Of a stretch of 57,201 bases of DNA, positions 3,608 through 25,942 are shown one piece after another. Numbering within the stretch: position 1 is the first letter of the stretch; every line of letters begins with the position of its first letter. Origin of the DNA: Ruditapes philippinarum. Lineage: Eukaryota. Made by a program: the position numbers and the translations under genes. The notes below the pieces were generated by a model, which saw nothing but the letters and a program-made list of their open reading frames with translations, did no database searches and had not been told where the DNA came from. The DNA lies in assembly GCF_026571515.1 (NCBI RefSeq), contig NW_026858783.1:124001-181201 (forward strand), written 5' to 3'.

Positions 3608-3697
3608 TTTTGGTAAATATACGTCACTGTGAAAACAACAACATAATCATGTACAATGTTTTATTGATAAACATTCAATACTTAACATATGCCATAT
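3608..3697 (-). repeat. Split direct repeat B2 (3' terminus of PAT-like element)
   Basis: 90 bp, matches 3845-3934 with one mismatch (ttattgataa vs ttatttataa). Confidence 0.95.
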
Positions 3698-3766
3698 TCT
3701 CCACATGTCATTCCACATCTGTATTATACTCATAGGCCTATCATTCAACCAATTAAACAGAGCACC

Positions 3767-3934
3767 TGAACAAGTCGAGAACAAATTAATACGTCACACT
3801 TATGTGTGACGTCATATGAATAGTTGTTGATCACGTGACTACTATTTTGGTAAATATACGTCACTGTGAAAACAACAACATAATCATGTACAATGTTTTA
3901 TTTATAAACATTCAATACTTAACATATGCCATAT
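3767..3934 (-). repeat. Internal B1-A2 junction (B1 3845-3934, A2 3767-3845)
   Basis: Copies of both element ends abut, sharing the base at 3845. This reproduces the junction expected in a circular intermediate. Confidence 0.95.
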
Positions 3935-4076
3935 GTAATGAGTAAAAACAGAAAAAAATAATACAAAAAAAAAAATATAAAAAAATACAATAAAAATAAA
4001 ATAAATGTATGTACTTATTTGTACAAATCATAGTAACCTACTATACTTGCATGTGCTAGCATTGAATAAAATGTCC

Positions 4077-5105
4077 TTAATCGTGAAATATAACATCGTC
4101 AGTGAAATTATCAGGCGTTCTTGCATGAACATAATGAGCGAAAAAACCTCAGAATCCTTCCAACGACCAACTTTTCTTACTATTTCTGGATTAATACCCT
4201 TTTCAATGGCAGAAGTAGCACCAGTGGGGCGAAATGATTTTGCTGAAAAACCTTGACCACCAAGACCAGCTTACGTTATAGCTTCTTCTAGTACCTTAGC
4301 TATTGAACTAGCCACTAAAGCCTTATAAGGGGGTCTTAAAGTAAGGAAAATAGCATTGTCAGAAGACCTATAATTTTTTGTTCTCTCAATGTAATCCTGC
4401 AGGGTTTGAACAGGATCTAACTTTACAATACTGGCGCGAGGCAATACAATCTCAAAACCTGTACGTTTAGTATCATTCTTGATACCAAAAAATTGAATTT
4501 TGGCATCTTCATCAGAAAATGCAACTTGATCAACAGCAAAAACCACCTTCCTAACACCATCTGTGTCAACAGTCTGAGCATTAGGAGCTATCTCAGATGG
4601 TCTTAACATAGCTGTCAAGGCAAGCAGAGTAATGGCTTTAAGTCTCAGGGCTTTAATATCTAATGTATTGTTGTCCTCCCATTTCAAAAACAAATCATGA
4701 AAACTACTTGTAGGCATAACCTTAGACCTTTGCATGGGCCTGGAAGTACCTGACTTAACAAGAGCACAAATCAGCATCTTAATCTCATAACTATCAGCAA
4801 TGTTTGGTAAACTTTGAACTTTATATATATGACCAATAGCAGCTGTAGCAGTACGTAATACTGAGTTAGGCCTTTGTGACTGACACCCTATCAAAAATAA
4901 AAAAATCTGCAAGATCTTTGTTGGCTAACGGAGGTAAAGGACATGGTCTAGACAGGCAAAAATCATACAGTTTCTCTAATATGTGGTTATATGAACGAAG
5001 CGTACTTGGAGCAATACAAAACTGAAATCTAGCAGAAACCTCTAATGACCAGCCCTTAAGTTCAAGTTTGTGCCTCCATATATCCTCCAAGCATACAGGG
5101 CCCAT
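4077..5105 (-). pseudogene. Tyrosine recombinase of PAT-like element (disrupted)
   Basis: N-terminal APSTLRSY helix; LLALTAMLRPSE (catalytic R), GIKND, SAKSFRPTGAT (R), VGRW and HY motifs. Frameshift in a T-run at ~4900, in-frame TAA at 4271-4273, frameshift in a T-run at ~4141-4146 just before the catalytic Tyr; stop at 4077-4079. Confidence 0.88.
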
Positions 5106-6920
5106 TTTCTGTTGCGGCAGGGTTCCGCTACTCCCATTGACCGACATACTCTCGGATTGTTTGGTAACCTCAATGGTGGGGAAATGGACATTTTGACTAG
5201 ACGGTGAAACCAAGTCTGACCTAACCATTTTGGGGCTATCACAGTTGCATATGCTTTTTGTGTTTGAATAACATCTAACACTTTGTGAAGTAAGCAAAAT
5301 GGGCGTTTACAAAGTTGTTTTTCTAAGTGCCAGTTGACCTGAGAAAGAGCGTCCACTGCTTCGGACAATGGTTCCCAGTACCGACTGTTGAACCTCTCTA
5401 ACTGACTGTTCTGACAATTTGCAAAGCGGTCGATGGTATGAGGACCCCAAAGTTTGTCTTGATATTTGAACAAATGCCGGTTTAACATCCAATTGTGTTT
5501 GTGGGGTGTCCTTGACCAATAATCCGACTCCCGATTGTTTACCCCTGATATATGTGCACACTTGACTTTGAGTCCAAGATCTATTGCTTCTGCCATATTG
5601 CTATTGCTAAATTGGTAAGGGATGGACTTGGACCCCATGTGGTTTATATAAGCCACGGCTGATATATTGTCTGTTAAAATCTGAATACTCTTTCCCGAAT
5701 AAGGCTGAAAAAGCTTTTAAAGCCATTAGTATAGCAAACATTTCTCTCTCGTTCGAAGACAGGTACGACATTCTTTTGTTCCAGTCGCCCGAAGCAACGT
5801 GACCTTTGTAAATAGCTCCCCAACCCAGATGGCTGGCATCCGTAACAATCTGACCTTGAACTACTTCTGTACATATTACTTTTTCATTCCAGTAATCAAC
5901 AGATTCTAACCACCAATTAAGTTCTTGTAACCCTTCAGGTGTAAGTGTAACCTGATTGGACCAACAACCCTTACACTTAGAAAGTAAACGATATGTGTTC
6001 CTGAGAAAAAGCTTGCCAGGAGATACAACCCAAGATACAGATATGCACTGACCACAAATTTGCGCTAAAAACCTAAATGTAATACGCTTGAGGTGTAACG
6101 CTTTACGTATGCTACGCTTTAGTTTAGAGGTACGAACAGAAAGCGCCTTGACTCTTACATTTTCTACAGTGCTGTAAATAGAATACCCAATATATTTAAT
6201 AGATCTAGAAGGATTAAGTTGTGATTTATCAAAATTGATAGTAAAACCCAACTCAGTCAATGTTTGTTATAACTGGTCAACGTGATCAGTAGCAGTTGAC
6301 CTACTAAAAGCCAACAGAAAATCGTCAACAAACGCAGTAACACGTAATCCAATAGATCTAAGATAAACAATAACAGTGCGGATAACTTTGTTAAAATAAT
6401 ATGGACTTGCACATAAACCAAAAGGTAGAACTTTCCATCTGTAATATGAATTATCAAACCTAAAACCTAAAAAATCTCTACAGTTTACAGCAACAGGAAT
6501 GTGAAAAAAGCCATCTTTTATATCAGTTGTGACAAAATAATCTCCAGGTTTAATCAAATTAACAGTATCTCTAATGTCTTCATTTCTGTATTTGGGCACA
6601 GTACAATAAGAGTTTAGTTTTCGCAAATCTGTGATGAGACGAAGATTGTTGTTCTTTTTTGGTACACAATGAATGGGATTAACACACGTTGGTTTTATAT
6701 CACATTTTTCAATACAATCAGCGTCAATAAGCCGCGATATTTCGTGTCTAAGAAAAATGTACTCCTTCCGACTGTAAGAGTTATTATTAAGTTCAAAACT
6801 AACACTTACTGGTGACGAAAAAGGTATTTCTATTCCATTGTTTATCCAGTTCAAAATGTAGGACGGTGCGTTGATATTTTTCCACGCGTCTAAATGATTC
6901 CGAAGCGTACTAATACACAT
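5042..6920 (-). pseudogene. pol of PAT-like element: reverse transcriptase + RNase H + N6-adenine methyltransferase-like domain (disrupted)
   Basis: RT: LRLITDLRKLN, TDIKDGFFHI, VLPFGL, FVDD. RNase H: TDASHLGWG, SNEREMFA, TDNISAVAYIN, HISGVNNRESDYWSR. MT-like: WGPHTIDRFA, VDALSQ, (N)xPF, VIAPKW..QTWF. In-frame TAA at 6267-6269 and several homopolymer frameshifts. Confidence 0.92.
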
Positions 6921-6943
6921 TTAATGTTAAAGGGAAAAAACTC

Positions 6944-7738
6944 TTATATCGACTCCGAACCTTGCACGTTTGAGTTGTCCTCCCTTGGTTGCCTTCGATT
7001 AGGAAATTGCCTATTAGCAAAACTCTGGAAAACGTCACGATCCTGTCTATATGAAAACGAACCTCGTCCTCGGCCACGACCATAAAAATACGACTGTCCA
7101 CGGCGTCCTCGCTCGTCGCCAGATCCAGATGAACGTCCAGCTGCAGCTAATGTTGCTGCTGATCGCAATGTTTCCAATGAAGTTTGGTCGAAACCCGAAG
7201 TATTTCTCTGAAGACTGCAGAATATTTTGGCAGTTGACGTGTCAAATTGACCTTTAACAAGTAAGGCAGCAAACTCCTCTTGAAGATATTTAACCTGTGC
7301 GTGATGAATAAGAAATAAGTTGTCCAAAGTTTCTTGATCTAAAGAACTGCCAGCTTCCAAAGTTCCCAACAGTTTTATGCCAGTTTCACAATACCGACCA
7401 CATTTTACAATGACATTCAATAGAGGTTGATCACTTCTCTTAATACCTTGTCTACTGTCATTTAATCTCAGTTCTGCCGGAATTTTTACCTTACTCAAAC
7501 TGTCCTTCAACGATTGGAACTCCGCCTATAAGTCCAGCTGATTACTAGTAGCGCCCGTCGCTGAAGACAAAAATGGCGGATTACTAGCGCCCACGAGGCC
7601 TAAAGCTGGAGGAATGGAATCCTCAGAGCGTCGCTCTTGCGCGAATCTGGTCTCAGATAAACCTTTCTCAATGTTTCTAAGTCGATTATCAAATGAACTC
7701 ATAAATTCATCAAACTTATTTTCAAGAGAATCAGACAT
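6944..7738 (-). pseudogene. gag-like ORF1 of PAT-like element (one internal stop)
   Basis: ORFs 7526-7807 and 6944-7510 are in the same frame, separated only by TAG at 7526-7528. ATG at 7738 (MSDSLENKF), coiled-coil-like N-terminus, RG-rich C-terminus, positioned 5' of RT. Confidence 0.8.
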
Positions 7739-7789
7739 AATCCGAAACTTTTGTCCAAAGCACAAAAAATGCACGTCCTGACTGTGGAA

Positions 7790-7868
7790 TGAACAAGTCG
7801 AGAACAAATTAATACGTCACACTTATGTGTGACGTCATATGAATAGTTGTTGATCACGTGACTACTAT
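7790..7868 (-). repeat. Split direct repeat A1 (5' terminus of PAT-like element)
   Basis: 79 bp identical to 3767-3845. Contains hairpin acgtcacac/gtgtgacgt, TGACGTCA and TCACGTGA. Confidence 0.95.
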
Positions 7869-18194: not shown

Positions 18195-19177
18195 TTTGTA
18201 TTCCCGCTGTTACTTTGAATAGCCCGACTGATGTTGGTAATGATCTTGACCACAAACGAAAAACCGGTACAAATTCCTACTAGTGATGACGAGGGTGGGA
18301 TAGATGTGTGTCTGTTTCAGTTCAAAAGTAATTGGAAGAAAACACAATCAATACAATTAACTATTTGCTATATTTTCTAAATGACACGGGCAGCATTTGT
18401 ACATACTTGAAATCAATAATAGAACTTGTAAAAAATCACAAATGCATCAATAGGTTCATGTTATATCCAAGGAAATATAGCTCTTTTGGAAAAATTTAAA
18501 TGTGCAAATTTTTATGATAACTATGTGAAATCATAAGTCAAGTTTATAATAGTAGTAGCATGACGTGTGAGCTGTTAAAGTATTATGTATCCAAACATTT
18601 TTTGCTTAAAATATATTGTTTGATACCTTTAGGACTACAAAAGCGTTTCATGTTTTTGCATTATTCCAAGTGTATTGTTTTGCCATAGTGATCACATTTT
18701 TAAAACCTGAACACAATAAAAAATGCTTCAAATGTAAATTGCAATCTTCAAATGGTTAAAGAGGATTTACTTAGTATCATTCAAATCAATTGCTGATTCA
18801 TTTGTTACTTGCTATAATCACGCGGTTTTCCAAAACAAATTAAAATTAGCCTATCACATTTTTAAGGATTTCAAATTTATGTACATGATTAAAAAATTAT
18901 ACGTATAACCATAATAATGCATTTTTGCCATGCTTAATGAAAATATTGCATGTATTTTATGAATTCTTTATGTATCTTTTTTTGGACTGATGGAGAAAGG
19001 GAAGAATCAATATTTGAGGTTATTTTTATGTTGCATATTCCCATATAATTTGAGTGAGTACTTTTGACGTAAACCGACGGTAAATCTTGTTTCCTTTCTT
19101 TAAACCTTAAATTTGGGACGGAATGAATAACATAAAGCATAACATTGTGGTGTTCAGACCGATGAGGCAAAAGCCTT

Positions 19178-19212
19178 TTAGTCGCCTTCTGTGAGCGAGG
19201 AGACCAATAAAT
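19178..19212 (-). CDS. TM-Pro-rich-CARD protein, last coding exon ((D)LLVSSLTEGD*)
   Basis: Acceptor aatcttttccag at 19213-19224; phase 1 matches the previous exon; TAA at 19178-19180. Short exon, so less certain than the others. Confidence 0.6.
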
Positions 19213-19478
19213 CTGGAAAAGATTATTAATGTTTTAATGTCAGGCGCTCAATTTATCCACCAAAATTGGAGATTTCAATGATGATATATGACCACAAACC
19301 TCTCCTTGATTCGCCAGACTAAGGAAACAAATAATGAGGACAATTTTTGAAGTATGGAAACACATAATTAAAAATTCGGACATATTGAGTCACAAGTTTA
19401 GATGACTTGACAATAGTAACTCCAAAGTATAAGCACCTAGACCCTACGCTTTGTCTGTGCAGATAAACTTGCACTTAC

Positions 19479-19710
19479 CTCTTTTTTGTTTATCATATAC
19501 CGTACGTGTTATTTGTTCTTCTAACATTTTGTCAAGTTGTTGTTCTATCTCATCTGTATTTAATCCCCTCTCTGTATAAGTCAAAAGGTCTGCAAGTTTG
19601 CTCTGATTTGTCATTTTAAGACGTTCTTTGAAATCTTTGTAAGCAAGTTCGCCTTTTGATCTTACTTTTGTCAAAATAGCTTCGTTTTTCTTTGTTGTAA
19701 TTGTCTCATC
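19479..19710 (-). CDS. TM-Pro-rich-CARD protein, coding exon 4 (C-terminal half of CARD-like domain + helical tail)
   Basis: ttacag acceptor, G/gtaagt donor, 232 bp, phase 0 to 1. DETITTKKNEAILTKVRSKGELAYKDFKERLKMTNQSKLADLL fits the CARD helix 4-6 pattern (KGxxAY/FxxFxxxL..Q..LAxLL). Confidence 0.82.
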
Positions 19711-20457
19711 CTGTAACAGTGTACTTGCTTTTGTAATCTTTCTATTGTAGATATACATTTTTTGAAGTTGTTTATGTAAACAAACATATATCACATAATC
19801 ACGGTCCGTAACCGCATACAAAATTATCTTTCAATTTTATTAATTATATAGGTTGCAACAATAAAATAGCCCTTGAGTAAAGTTATATTAAGGACACGTA
19901 AAAGGTAGTAATTACTAACAAGATTCACTATCGCTTAACCCATTCAATGTTTTCTTATTATTAATATATATAAGCGATATCCACATATGAATAAATTGAA
20001 ATTGCGTATACACCTTCTGTTATGGACATTATAATAGTTAGTCCTCGTAATAAAAGAAACCCATATTTTATAAAAATGTACTTGTAATAATTTTACATAT
20101 TAACCTATATTGACACTAGCAAATTATTTTCTTCAAAGGTTATATTGTCGGCCTAGGTAAGTCGGATGCCGCCTACTATCTAAGCTCTATCACTTGTGGT
20201 ATAAGAGAGAAACATTTTTTGAAGATATATTTTTCTAAAAAAAAGGGTTTTTCTAAAAAAGGTATCTATGTGACAGACTATATTCTTGACCCAAGTATTT
20301 TTGGTTCACATAATATAATGATTCAGGATTATTCCATTTTGTTTCAATTCCTGAAAAAAAAAATCAGCAGACATATAGATTTAATAATTTTAAGATGAAT
20401 TTTAAATACAAAGGCAATATGCAATGAAGCATATTATAAAAGTAGTTGATATAATAC

Positions 20458-20618
20458 CTTTATGTCCCGTCTGTCAATGCGGGAGAATAATTCGAACCCT
20501 GTGTCCAGGTCAATGATTTCATCGGGATTGAGATATGTTTTAAGCTTCCTTGTGCTTTGATCGAAGACTTTTCGCCAAACCTCGATTTCTAGTTCTGTAG
20601 ATTGTACAGCCATCCTTT
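20458..20618 (-). CDS. TM-Pro-rich-CARD protein, coding exon 3 (N-terminal half of CARD-like domain)
   Basis: Open 161-bp exon, phase 1 to 0, AG acceptor at 20619-20620, AAG/gtatta donor. Encodes (E)RMAVQSTELEIEVWRKVFDQSTRKLKTYLNPDEIIDLDTGFELFSRIDRRDIK. Confidence 0.78.
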
Positions 20619-20789
20619 CTTTATTAAAATATATTAAAAAAAAAACAACTTAAAAATATCCAAATATATGGAAATATGATTTTGATTTCGTTTCGAGAAG
20701 AAAGTAGAAGAAATGTAAATTTATTCACACATTTTTAAGCTTTGACACTGAGCTTATACAAAAGGCATTACAATTTAAACATGGAAATC

Positions 20790-21445
20790 AATGATCTGCT
20801 ACAATGATCAGCTGGCAAAGAAATCTAGTGTGGCATACCTAAATATAAAGGAAAATGTCCTGTTGGAATACTCAGCTTGCTAAGCAAAATTTTGTATAAA
20901 AATAATCTGTTGAAATAATCTGCTGTTCTGGCAATCTAGCGGGCAATCAGAATAATAGTGAAAAATGCTTTGCAGGATTAATCAGCTGGCTAAGCAATCT
21001 AGCAGGCCATTATAAAATAATCTGTAATATCATTTCTGCTGAAATGCCGAGCTGGCATAGCAATCTAGCGGGACATTCCTGAAAACAGTGTATATAATGC
21101 TTATATGTATGCTAAGCCGACAGACCAATCCAGCAAAAAATTCTAAAAATTTAAAGTCAAATTTCTCTGCTAGAATGCTCAACTGGCAGAGCAATATAGC
21201 GGGGTATGTTCTTAAAAAATGTAAAAAAAAACTCTGCTAGAAAACTCAGCTTGCAGAACAATGTTGCGGTGGATTCTTTAATATAGTATAAAATTGCTCT
21301 ACTGGAATGCTGAGTTGGCTAAATAATATAGTTGGGTATTCCTAAACTAGGGTATATCGAATCAAAATGCTCTATTCGAATGCTCAGCTGGCTAAACAAT
21401 CTAGCGGCACATTCTAAAATATTGTGTAAAATGCTCTGCTGGAAT
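20790..21445. repeat. Degenerate ~62-bp tandem repeat (~10 copies), intronic
   Basis: Recurring aatgctcagctggc.aagcaatctagcggg...aaatgctctgct units spaced ~55-74 bp apart. Confidence 0.85.
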
Positions 21446-22377
21446 AAATTTTATAATTGGAATTGTTTGACATTCAGTTATGGACATTCCAAGTCATCAT
21501 AACCACGCTATTTTACAAAAATGTAACGTTATAAAGGGCATTTGCTAGATATCATAAATGCAGTGATGGAAACTTAACTTATATAAAGGTTGAAGAAGAC
21601 CATTTCTGATTATATACACATAAGGTAGCGAAATGGTAAGGCTTCATTTTGGAATGTAATTATTTCATTTGAAAAAAAAACAAACAAACAAAAAACAACA
21701 AAAACTTCATATTAACAAAATGTAGGTTATGTAAAAATGTAATATGTTGTTCGATGCTTAAGAAGCGCAACAGTGTTCTAAAGATCTATAAAGGTCGTGT
21801 TGGACCCTGTACTTTCATATTTCTTATATGTCTCAAATACCATCGAGTTATTTTTCCGCTTCAAGTATAGCAATGATGATAAGTGCAAACTTCTATTGAA
21901 CAATATCTATGGTTGAAATCATCTCGTATTCAGAAATAGATATTGTGCTCCGACCCATACAAAACCTTCATAGCTATAACTAAGAAAGAGATGATTGAGT
22001 TCTACGCTTGCCCAATCTGATATTGTGATCCATAGCTTTTTTCAACCTAAAACAAGTGACGCTCAGCAGTAGTCCTAGTAAATAAGCCATTATCTAAATA
22101 TTATGTCTTTTTGTTGGGTCCGAGCTAAAATATACTATTTCAAACTGACCATTCTTCAAAAGTATAGTTTTTCTTTGTATTTAGTGTGGTCATTACATAA
22201 ATTTACGCTCCCCGTTTATTATATTTTTGTCCTTTTTTTTTTCGAGAAATGACGTCATTGTTATTACTTTGCATAAATATGGACGGATCATCGTTTTGAC
22301 TCTGTGTATTTTTATAGTTTGAGAGCATACTCTGTTACATAGCTTTGAAACTAAGTTGTGTCTAGGTTGTCTCTTAC

Positions 22378-22887
22378 CTTGTTCTTCTGCCAGTTGCTGC
22401 GCCATGTCCGCTTGTTGTTGTATGGGTGTCACAGGCGGTGGTGTAGGAGCCCTATCCGGAGGTGTAGGAGCCCTTGGTGTGGGTGTAGGTGGCGTAGCCA
22501 GAGGTGTAGGAGCCCTTGGTGTGGGTGTAGGTGCTCTTTGCATGGATATAGGTGGCATAGTCGTGGGTGTAGGAACCTTTTGCATTGGTGTAGGTCCCCT
22601 TATCGGGTGTGTTGGTGCTATTGTCATGGGTGAAGGAAATATTGCTGTAGGTGTATGTGACGTAGGAGGAATCGGAGGTGCCCTTGGCGTGGGTGAAGGG
22701 GGCTCAGTCGGGGGTATAGGCGCTCCTGGCGTAGATGAATGTGGCCTAGGTGGTAGTGTACCAACCGAAGACATTATTGGTGTGGTTGTCCTTGGTATAG
22801 TTGGCCGCCTGTTACGTAGCGACGATTGGTCATGATCCTTAAGTCTGACAGGTACTTTCGTCTTTTGAGTCGATCGCCTTATATTCT
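22378..22887 (-). CDS. TM-Pro-rich-CARD protein, coding exon 2 (basic juxtamembrane segment + Pro/Thr heptad repeats)
   Basis: attcag acceptor, G/gtaaga donor, 510 bp, phase 1 to 1, fully open. ~21-bp / 7-aa repeats (TPRAPTP). GC-rich against AT-rich introns. Confidence 0.88.
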
Positions 22888-24009
22888 CTGAATATAAATA
22901 AATAAAAATATTTTGGTTAAAAAAACCTTTTCATTTTATTCCTCTCAGAATATTTTTATTGTCAAGAACACGAGAACCGAAAACTCCGAAAACCAGAATC
23001 AATTTTTTCCCAATAAGTTCATACAAAGTATCCTCTAAAAACCGGAACCTCTGAAATCCGAAAACCGGACGGTTTTCTATGGCTACTTATGTATTCTGCG
23101 TATGCTTCATATTTGGGATGGGCGTTTAGATACGGGTTCTTACACAGATTACGGACACAATGGTTGTTAAACAATAAATCATGTATTGTGTCAACAGGCT
23201 AATTTTTGGCGTATTAGTACTTTCGACACAAGCGATTTTATGAGTGTTAAGACCATGTTATGTTACAGTTTAGCATCATGGCACATAAGTATGAGGAACC
23301 CGAAGTATAAAATGTATATACAGGCTGTCAAGTGGTCCCACACCATAAAATAGGAAAAAAGTAGGAACACGTTTTGCCAAAAAGTAGGAAAATAGTAGAA
23401 AAAAGTAATAACATTTACCATAAAAAGTAGGAATATTTAGCTGTCTTACCTAATTAAATACTAAATGATTTGTATTCTTTGATTTAATTAACCTAACAAT
23501 TGCATACTGATTACATGGTCAATGCACACAATTTATCAATCGACGAAAATTTCGTGAGATGCACACAGTAAGATGTGATTAGATATGATTTGTTTCTAAT
23601 GAAATAATTATACTGACCTTTATAGCGCAATAGAGTAAACTTCCGGTTTATAATTTTTTAATGTCCTATTTGTCTTTAGTTCCCTTTTTTAAGTTATAAA
23701 TATTTTCAACATTAATGAAACTATGATTTTTGTTTTTGGATTTTTTAGTATTTTTTGCACTCACTTATTTATATAAAGGCTATATTCTTTTGAATAACAT
23801 GATTAAAGAACTAATATTCAGAGTTCATTCTGAATTGAAATCAATAAATATCTTTTCAGTGCTGTAAAAGACTATGCAAAACGAAATAAATCAGTGTTTC
23901 TAAGTTGTAGACAATTTTGAAAGCACTTAAATTTTATTATAATTATACTTCATGTAGCAATTTTCAAGCTTTACTGGTTGCGTGAGACCTAAAATACCCC
24001 AACTGGTAT

Positions 24010-24168
24010 TGCTTTAGGCACCTGAGTAGCATCACTGACGTTCTGTAAGCTAGCTGGATAGATTCATTACATAAAGCAAATATTAAATCTTAACATCCTT
24101 ATTGGGTTTCGAACCCATAACGTAGTGTTTGATGTCAACGGCCATAATGACTTGGCCACGGATGTCCC
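24010..24168 (-). mobile_element. Degenerate tRNA-derived SINE
   Basis: Minus strand shows A-box-like gtggccaagtca, B-box ggttcgaaaccc and body tatccagctagcttacagaacgtcagtgatgctactcaggtgcc; related to 51775-51985. Confidence 0.55.
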
Positions 24169-24217
24169 TTACTGTCAAACTTATTCACATAAATATATAA
24201 AAATAGATTCACTTTAC

Positions 24218-24314
24218 CGTTTGGAAAACATTTCGCGCATGCTATAACAAATCCGGCAAAAGCGACGAGAAAAGCAATAATAAAGCCAAATGTTTGCGTG
24301 TCTACCAAATCCAT
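24218..24314 (-). CDS. TM-Pro-rich-CARD protein, coding exon 1 (signal-anchor transmembrane helix, CxxC)
   Basis: Exon 24218-24327 with ttcttttgcag acceptor, accATGG Kozak context and G/gtaaag donor (phase 1). Encodes MDLVDTQTFGFIIAFLVAFAGFVIACAKCFPN. Confidence 0.8.
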
Positions 24315-25942
24315 GGTTTCTGTGGATCTGCAAAAGAAAGATACCATCATAAACTTTAATTCATAAAAGCAAATGCACCTTATTTAATCATATTGCAATT
24401 ATGCGGTTCCTTTAGCCAAGATATTATTGACAAGTTTATCATTTTCAGGTAATGGCTTTACTCCAATTCCCCTATAAAGGTGTCATTATTGTTTGCTTTT
24501 CTTGCGATCCCTATTGCTCATCAAATACAAACTTGATTATCATTACTTGTGTTATTTTCCTTTTATTTTCTTACAAATTTATATAATAAACGTCTTGATT
24601 TGTGAAGTTTTTTTAAAAAAAAAATAGAATACTGATTAGCTTAATATATAGTATATAAATACATTTTAAGGATCCATTTACATAGTAAAAAAGCATAAAT
24701 GATGAAAACAGAAATAAAACCTATTGTTTTTAAACCAGAATTTTAAAAATAAACAAAACAAAAAACTTTTTTATGCATGTGATAAACATTTGATGTTCTA
24801 AATATATTTGACTCTATAGGTCAGGGTGAAATTTGTATCGTCTGTAATTTTTGTCCTAGGTGTTTGTTTAGTATGAAATAAGTCATCTCCTTTCAAGGAA
24901 AAGTACGTCAATATCAGGAGAAATCAATGATATCAAATTACACTATTATCACTCATTATTTAAGTCATAGGTCTTTTTGTCAAATATAATTCAAATTTTT
25001 CATCTATTGACAAAGTGATTGCCATTTGATAATCAAAGTTCAAAAATAGTACGCTGATTTTCAATGTCAATTTAAACCCAATGTCATCGTTTGCAGTATT
25101 GTTTTATGCTTAGTATTGTTTTGTCAAATTATGAATGACATATAATCATAGATAACAAAATTATTGCTGCATTCACAAAATATCAGTAAGGTCTAGGTCA
25201 TATATAAGTCATGACTCAGCTTAAAGCATTTTAAGGAATTTTCAAAGGGCTATAAGTATTCCGATTTACAAAATAGTTATAGCTATTTTAGCTAAATTCC
25301 ATGCAATGACTTTGAACATCAAGGTCACATATGAGTCAAGGTCTAATTCCTTACAATATAAAGGTATACTGCCTGATATTTCCTCCTTACAAGCTTTGTA
25401 AAAAAGTTAATGCACAGTTATAGCAAATAGCATAAAAAAAATAATTTGACTATAAAAGTGAAGGCATATAAACTTTAAGGTATAATTCCACTCAATATTA
25501 TTGTTAGTCCAAGTAAAGATGAAATACGCCCGTAATATACCAAGTTACAGCAATATAAGCAAAGTCAAGTATAATACAAAATACTAATAAGCAGATGTAT
25601 TTAGCCTTTAAGTGACTTATTATCTGAACGTCTTCATGAATTTTATTACATATCGATGTGCGATTGGTTAGGGGTTACGTATATCTCAACTATATTGAAA
25701 GCTATCGTAAACCCATAAAAGTAGAAACATAAAAATTTAACCTTGTAATCAAAATTGTCGAATCAGCATATCTTTAAACAAGATACTATTCAAAAGATCA
25801 AAAGCACAAAATGTTACCGTAATTATGTTTTAAATAAGTTTTATTTTAACACAATCTGTTTAAATTTAAACAAAACACAACAACAAAATCCAGTAGAGGT
25901 TTCAATCTATTCACATTTTAAAGGGGGAAAAACAACAAAACA

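Follow-up and report, generated by a model that had tools for sequence, protein, structure and literature searches.

CARD adaptors organise cell-death and innate-immune signalling, and the site at which they are anchored decides what is sensed, as for MAVS on mitochondria. We describe here a gene on the minus strand of a 57,201-nucleotide (nt) stretch of contig NW_026858783.1 of the clam Ruditapes philippinarum (the window, to which all coordinates refer). Our analysis indicates that this is probably a real, expressed clam gene, made by exon shuffling, whose product is a single-pass membrane CARD protein of about 336–344 amino acids (aa). The predicted protein would be laid out as an 8-residue N-terminus, a transmembrane signal anchor, a basic motif, a Pro/Thr linker of about 110 aa, the CARD and a short helix.

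Membrane-anchored adaptors and the clam locus

The initial annotation of this DNA had likened the product to a reversed MAVS, a comparison that we keep as an analogy only. Like MAVS, a homologue of which has been described in oyster (PMC5557890), the predicted protein is an adaptor without an enzyme that has a CARD, a proline-rich stretch and one membrane anchor. However, the order in the clam is reversed (anchor – Pro – CARD), and the clam anchor is a predicted N-terminal signal anchor, whereas that of MAVS is a C-terminal tail anchor: the sole hydrophobic helix lies at residues 9–27 and the C-terminal exons are hydrophilic. The MAVS CARD is an N-terminal CARD_2 domain (PF16739), whereas the clam CARD is C-terminal and belongs to PF00619; PF16739 was found only as the second domain of a paralogue (P0003), and neither a CARD_2 nor a DUF4559 exon was found in the window. 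The anchor and the linker are modules common to DUF4559 paralogues, beyond the death fold we found no sequence relation to MAVS, and the clam protein has no established TRAF or pLxIS motif. We rejected a relationship to MAVS on the grounds of the other CARD subtype, the other kind of anchor at the opposite end and the unrelated linker.

CARD19/BinCARD resembles the predicted protein in being small, having a CARD and a single transmembrane helix, and lacking an enzyme domain; its CARD is N-terminal, its transmembrane helix is C-terminal and it has no Pro/Thr repeat linker. BinCARD CARD structures were among the Foldseek matches of the paralogue model described below (ranks 29 and 33). The lymphocyte transmembrane adaptors LAT, PAG, NTAL, LIME and SIT are alike in their leaderless, very short ectodomain, single transmembrane helix, juxtamembrane Cys and long cytosolic scaffold tail. 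They carry tyrosine motifs, whereas clam exon 2 contains no Tyr (nor Cys or Trp) and the output would be a folded CARD. A juxtamembrane CxxC, the palmitoylation motif of such adaptors, is present in the window copy, but across the paralogues only Cys26 is kept (seven of nine copies).

Lineage-specific expansions of transmembrane – DED – TRADD-N proteins have been reported in bivalves (Kaur et al. 2021, PMC8195603), where, as at the clam locus, bivalve shuffling joins a membrane module that stays constant at the N-terminus to immune domains that vary at the C-terminus. Those proteins have a Cys-rich extracellular domain followed by DED and TRADD-N, whereas the clam gene has no ectodomain and encodes a lone CARD (or, in paralogues, DUF4559). 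Membrane-anchored death-fold shuffling in bivalves is a known principle. The domain order had not been recognised from characterised proteins at the outset, and we likewise did not find a transmembrane – Pro-rich – CARD layout in the literature or, within the length ranges searched, among annotated proteins in the databases. The exon 2 module was found in no annotated protein of 135–429 aa, the search with the whole exon being swamped by Pro-rich candidates; its juxtamembrane part as query gave two candidates, neither of them significant, and a search from the CARD of P0003 (range 127–404 aa) returned only CARD-only or multi-CARD models.

Exon structure and spliced transcripts

Five minus-strand segments, all with GT/AG borders, join in frame and without a stop in phases 1, 1, 0 and 1. 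Translated exon by exon, they encode 32 + 1 + 169 + 1 + 53 + 77 + 1 + 10 = 344 aa, with split codons for E, E and D and then a stop, which reproduces the arithmetic of the initial annotation. Transcript data came from Logan contigs of two runs, X1 and X2 (labelled 'RNA?'), and from two raw RNA runs, X21 and X23. The joint of exons 1 and 2 (24218/22887; X1 contig, depth 86) and that of exons 3 and 4 (20458/19710; X2 contig, depth 12.7, short side 23 nt) were found exactly at the predicted places. The joint of exons 2 and 3 was found at 22378/20594 and not at 20618 (X1 contig, depth 25.7, short side 40 nt); the acceptor at 20594 (tctacag/AA) lies 24 nt inside exon 3 and keeps the frame, and the loss of eight residues (RMAVQSTE) gives a protein of 336 aa. 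At all three joints the contigs show the canonical CT..AC that corresponds to GT..AG on the minus strand. Thus, of the four junctions initially claimed, two stood as drawn and a third stood with a shifted acceptor, but the joint of exons 4 and 5 (19479/19212) was not seen in any contig or read of the four runs.

The depth of the X1 contigs was 20–120 over the exons and zero in introns 2 and 3 outside repeats, and the contig joining exons 2 and 3 was similar in depth to exon 3 itself (20). Because the nearest exon 3 copies are only 85–87% identical in protein, this contig does not stem from a paralogue. Paralogous sequences were present among the loose ends of the contigs: in one, exon 2 is preceded by an exon 1 coding for IACSKRFPN, and in another, from X1, exon 2 is spliced to the first DUF4559 exon of contig C9566 (..AGAMTHEKH).

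Coding exon 1 (24218–24314) begins with an ATG at 24314–24312 and encodes the acidic N-terminus, the hydrophobic helix (about 24234–24290) and then KCFPN, ending at a phase 1 donor (ACG/GTAAAG). Exon 2 (22378–22887), a phase 1-1 exon whose donor is used in X1 contigs, holds the conserved basic juxtamembrane motif (22778–22885), Pro/Thr-rich tandem repeats (about 22436–22601) and the conserved end PVTPIQQQADMAQQLAEEQ (22379–22435). Exon 3 (20458–20618) encodes the first half of the CARD (helices 1–3); its acceptor at 20618 is kept across the CARD family, the alternative at 20594 being the one seen in a contig. The ancestral start codon of the CARD-only paralogues lies inside it, at 20611–20613. 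Exon 4 (19479–19710) encodes the second half of the CARD (helices 4–6, to about 19567) and the C-terminal helix, and its donor (GAG/GTAAGT) is the same in all close paralogues.

Downstream of exon 4, the previously proposed exon 5 (19178–19212, 11 codons including the stop) is an unsupported candidate 3' exon, with no junction seen and the acceptor AG missing from eight of nine paralogues. The AG (ttttccAG/A) is present only at this locus and in a copy on contig C6961 that is 98% identical over the stretch; CAAAC stands at this position in the eight others. Contig depth in X1 and X2 was low over 18800–19480. Alternatively, retention of intron 4 would end the protein in the stretch 19444–19478, with a Gly codon begun by base 19479, then KCKFICTDKA and a TAG stop at 19444–19446, and the resulting end, GKCKFICTDKA, is similar to that of the database model P0001. 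RefSeq models of paralogues join exon 4 to varied 3' exons (with tails DETRQD.. and GMRGSGSSL, and a CARD_2 domain in P0003), and none of these tails was found in the window or its 1.5-kb flanks. Very different 3' exons were joined to the exon 4 donor across the CARD family. The model contains no enzymatic domain, as the initial annotation had held, and a downstream catalytic domain is not supported, since minus-strand open frames of at least 60 aa between 7800 and 19200 (~11 kb downstream) gave no Pfam match. Farther along the window, overlapping minus-strand open reading frames of 143–217 aa occupy 3608–7868.

Other irregularities were observed in and around the gene. An X1 contig of depth 4 skips 254 nt at 18965–19220 with non-canonical ends (CT..AA), and X2 has a loose end at 18965; the skip is probably an indel polymorphism among individuals, which would delete the proposed exon 5. 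At 20790–21450 in intron 2, a ~66-nt unit (…CAGCTGGC.AAGCAATCTAGCGGG…) is repeated in tandem about ten times, in degenerate copies. Reads of X21 match this repeat but are internally rearranged, which makes it probable that related copies at other genomic sites are transcribed. In intron 1, two stretches (23922–24118 and 22937–23133) had an exon-like X1 contig depth (68–111) with several sequence variants, and probably represent dispersed repeats; the former holds a box-B-like GGTTCGAAACCC, and ARAGORN found no tRNA in the high-depth intron 1 repeat.

The CARD and the shuffled anchor-linker cassette

We identify the helical domain at the C-terminus as a caspase/Apaf-1-type CARD (PF00619), in agreement with the call first made from the letters. 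In Pfam searches, which were run exon by exon, exon 4 alone matched positions 44–83 of the 85 of the CARD profile (E = 0.0049, 17.3 bits, gathering score 23.9); this C-terminal half is where an intron-split CARD would be expected to match. Among relatives retrieved with exon 4, the Mercenaria protein P0007 contains three CARDs (76.6 bits, E = 1.5e-21), P0012 has a CARD at 24.4 bits against the cutoff of 23.9, and in P0003 the first domain aligned to CARD positions 2–83 and the second to CARD_2. A profile of the family matched the CARD of CED-3 (E = 3.6e-4), followed by CARD8 and Apaf-1.

Fold and complex predictions were made on the database paralogue P0002 as a proxy (88% identical to exon 3 and 92% to exon 4). 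Its AlphaFold2 model, built on a 17-row alignment (predicted local distance difference test, pLDDT, 78.5), has six helices and a C-terminal helix (helices at 3–27, 30–34, 45–53, 57–71, 73–85 and 89–100). When this model was compared with the PDB by Foldseek, nearly all matches listed were CARDs (CARD8, caspase-9, Apaf-1, NLRC4, ARC and others), and the top ten had target-normalised TM values of 0.72–0.82 and a root-mean-square deviation of about 2 Å; the E-values were weak (0.07–2), as is usual for 90-residue bundles. The modelled paralogue is thus a six-helix antiparallel bundle nearest to solved CARDs, and the death fold initially proposed for the peptide of exons 3 and 4 held in this proxy. 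A homotrimer predicted for P0002 residues 1–105 reached an ipSAE of 0.84 (best control 0.00), above a mark reached by 21 of 30 solved homomers and by none of 23 monomers, with a contact agreement between runs of at least 79% and a partner pLDDT of at least 85. The contacts include the K71-G72 (KG) turn, which is nearly invariant in the family alignment. The trimer supports self-association of the CARD, as a prediction and not a demonstration.

Upstream of the CARD, hydropathy, charge and residue counts bore out the composition described in the initial annotation (a short N-terminus, a hydrophobic helix, a basic juxtamembrane segment and a Pro/Thr stalk). The best 19-residue window, FGFIIAFLVAFAGFVIACA (residues 9–27), has a Kyte-Doolittle mean of 2.65; its N-terminal flank holds no K/R and two D/E, and its C-terminal flank eight K/R in 31 aa. 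This acidic N-flank and strongly basic C-flank fit a predicted N-out/C-in signal anchor. Pro makes up 35% and Thr 20% of the exon 2 core, and the tandem repeats of the exon have periods (21, 42 and 63 nt) that are all in-frame multiples of three.

In the clam assembly (1.41 Gb, 15,874 contigs) we found 11 loci with exon-1-type transmembrane exons (56–88% identity) and 36 exon-2-type matches. The latter begin with a basic motif (xMRRSTxKRKxPVRLEDHDQPxLRNRR) and end with PVTPIQQQxDMAQQLxEEQ/gt, with Pro/Thr repeats in between and open frames that range between copies from about 130 to >770 aa. By alignments and open frames, the window gene has the transmembrane exon, the phase 1-1 exon and both motifs. 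DUF4559 (PF15112) exons come after exons 1 and 2 on contigs C288, C9566 and C6415, and C7438 resembles a near copy of C288; on C288, the anchor and Pro/Thr linker precede DUF4559 at L018:168-836 and 1364-1603. We found no description of this putative membrane-anchored DUF4559 family (C288, C9566, C7438 and C6415). In the clam Corbicula, many NLR-like proteins have been reported to carry DUF4559 fused to NACHT (PMC8298618).

The CARD exons are themselves numerous, with at least 51 exon-4-like and 42 exon-3-like matches in the genome. The closest database proteins to the window gene are uncharacterised R. philippinarum RefSeq proteins, and its exons 3 and 4 are 77–92% identical to those of clam CARD-only and multi-CARD paralogues (XP_060580077.1, XP_060596527.1 and others). 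Among the latter, P0003 (XP_060596527.1) is annotated with CARD and CARD_2, and P0018 (a partial XP_ model of 401 aa) with three tandem CARDs. These paralogues share the exon structure and the start-codon position with the window gene, which differs from them in the anchor and linker exons spliced in front: the RefSeq models P0002, P0003, P0019 and P0020 begin at a Met homologous to the exon 3 ATG. The acceptor just upstream of this ATG is conserved family-wide, and some CARD-only copies have an in-frame TAG before the ATG. Because the CARD-only paralogues start at a Met that survives in exon 3, and because the anchor-linker precedes DUF4559 elsewhere, the locus is best read as a CARD-family gene to which a shuffled, symmetric phase 1-1 cassette gave an anchor and a linker. 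The cassette would have moved in front of a member of the small-CARD family, leaving the old start codon in exon 3.

On at least 11 contigs, CARD exons, among them those of distant CARD subtypes, are immediately preceded by an exon-2-type exon. We found an exon-1-type transmembrane exon together with exon 2 and the CARD at two places only: this locus, where they lie within 5.1 kb, and C2012, where they are scattered over 28 kb. We found no convincing candidate for a transmembrane first exon 10–20 kb upstream of the paralogues with exon 2 and CARD exons on C1048, C14163, C13815 and C6961 or of the second exon 2 of C2012. On C13815, C14216, C4268, C5595 and C8655, two to four tandem exon-2-type exons, each beginning with the juxtamembrane motif, lie upstream of one CARD exon pair; such exons may be phase 1-1 cassettes that are used as alternatives or included in series, and no first exon was found for these five loci.

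A partial duplicate of the window gene on C6961 is 87% identical in nucleotides over 23689–18852, has no exon 1 and carries a stop and frameshifts in exon 4. The ratio of non-synonymous to synonymous substitution rates (dN/dS) of exon 4 is 0.25–0.73 against intact paralogues and 1.2–1.6 for the C6961 copy; exon 1 has too few sites for its dN/dS to inform, except against C6415 (0.27).

Alternative readings and possible role

Several points weigh against a real, expressed, membrane-anchored CARD protein. That X1 and X2 are RNA is only a guess, each junction was seen in one contig (in two cases with a short side, of 23 and 28 nt), and the contig joining exons 1 and 2 could stem from a near-identical paralogue such as C9566. 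Of the raw RNA runs, most matches of X21 were partial and lay in repeats, leaving too few clean reads for a junction count, and no reads of X23 matched. For the 3' end of the gene there are only candidate endings. The fold and complex models were made on P0002 and not on the joined peptide of the window, and the trimer score may stem from solved CARD filaments that the predictor has memorised. Membrane topology, cellular location and function we infer from sequence features. The exon 3 ATG is intact, so that a soluble CARD-only product may also arise, and the C6961 duplicate is a pseudogene, so that the young fusion may be short-lived in evolution.

The intact ATG also opens the possibility of two transcription units, in which a soluble CARD-only protein started within exon 3 would be the main product and the joint of exons 2 and 3 a minor read-through or chimeric splice from an anchor-linker stub that has lost its 3' exons. 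The four RefSeq models that begin at the homologous Met, the conservation at the window locus of both the ATG and the acceptor just upstream of it, the entry of the observed joint into a cryptic-looking acceptor within the old open reading frame, and the membership of exons 1 and 2 in DUF4559 genes at other loci all favour this. However, the depth of the spliced X1 contig, about equal to that of exon 3, is no small minority, the window offers the exon 2 donor no other partner, the recurrence of exon-2-type exons directly upstream of CARD exons argues for an architecture in use, and the frame through the conserved acceptor is open in L012 and L013. We regard two units as unlikely.

It is quite unlikely, in our judgement, that the gene is a functionless young chimera, transcribed and spliced while drifting towards a pseudogene. 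The decayed C6961 copy (with its exon 4 lesions, missing exon 1 and raised dN/dS) would be such a case, the exon 5 acceptor is a lineage-specific change, and no protein model of the layout was found in the length ranges searched. Nevertheless, the open reading frame of the window copy is intact through all exons, its exon 4 dN/dS is below 1 against functional-looking paralogues, exon contig depth is high relative to introns 2 and 3, and the exon 2 repeat periods are all multiples of three. The opposite topology (type II; N-in, C-out), in which the Pro/Thr repeats would form an O-glycosylated, mucin-like stalk that displays the helical domain outside the cell, is suggested by the Pro and Thr content of the exon 2 core, since Pro/Thr-rich tandem repeats right after a transmembrane helix are typical of extracellular stalks. 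We consider it very improbable: positive charge is concentrated on the C-terminal side of the helix, exon 2 is free of Cys, and CARD and DUF4559 are intracellular domain types, the latter linked to NACHT proteins in clams (PMC8298618).

For the membrane-anchored CARD protein that we favour, the positive-inside rule would predict N-out/C-in insertion, with the linker and the CARD facing the cytosol. The CARD would then be tethered by a flexible linker to a membrane of the secretory pathway or the cell surface, where, by analogy with CARDs in general, it might self-associate or recruit CARD proteins through homotypic CARD–CARD contacts; the many CARD-only and multi-CARD paralogues, as well as caspases with a CARD, are candidates for such partners. 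More speculatively, and with considerable doubt, we suggest that the exon 1–2 module could serve a defence system specific to clams as a common membrane 'address tag', which would put either a CARD or DUF4559 at one membrane site, where the anchored CARD might nucleate a membrane-proximal CARD signalosome and draw the expanded set of soluble CARD-only and multi-CARD proteins into it. If true, this would be a signalling layout without a characterised counterpart.

An N-terminally signal-anchored CARD would be made at the endoplasmic reticulum and might travel on to endosomes or the cell surface, where, to our knowledge, no CARD adaptor has been described. The locus captures exon shuffling under way, a symmetric-phase cassette having moved between CARD and DUF4559 genes. 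It is relevant to genome annotation, since no model of a protein laid out in this way turned up, and, so far in one clam lineage, to the diversification of bivalve innate immunity.

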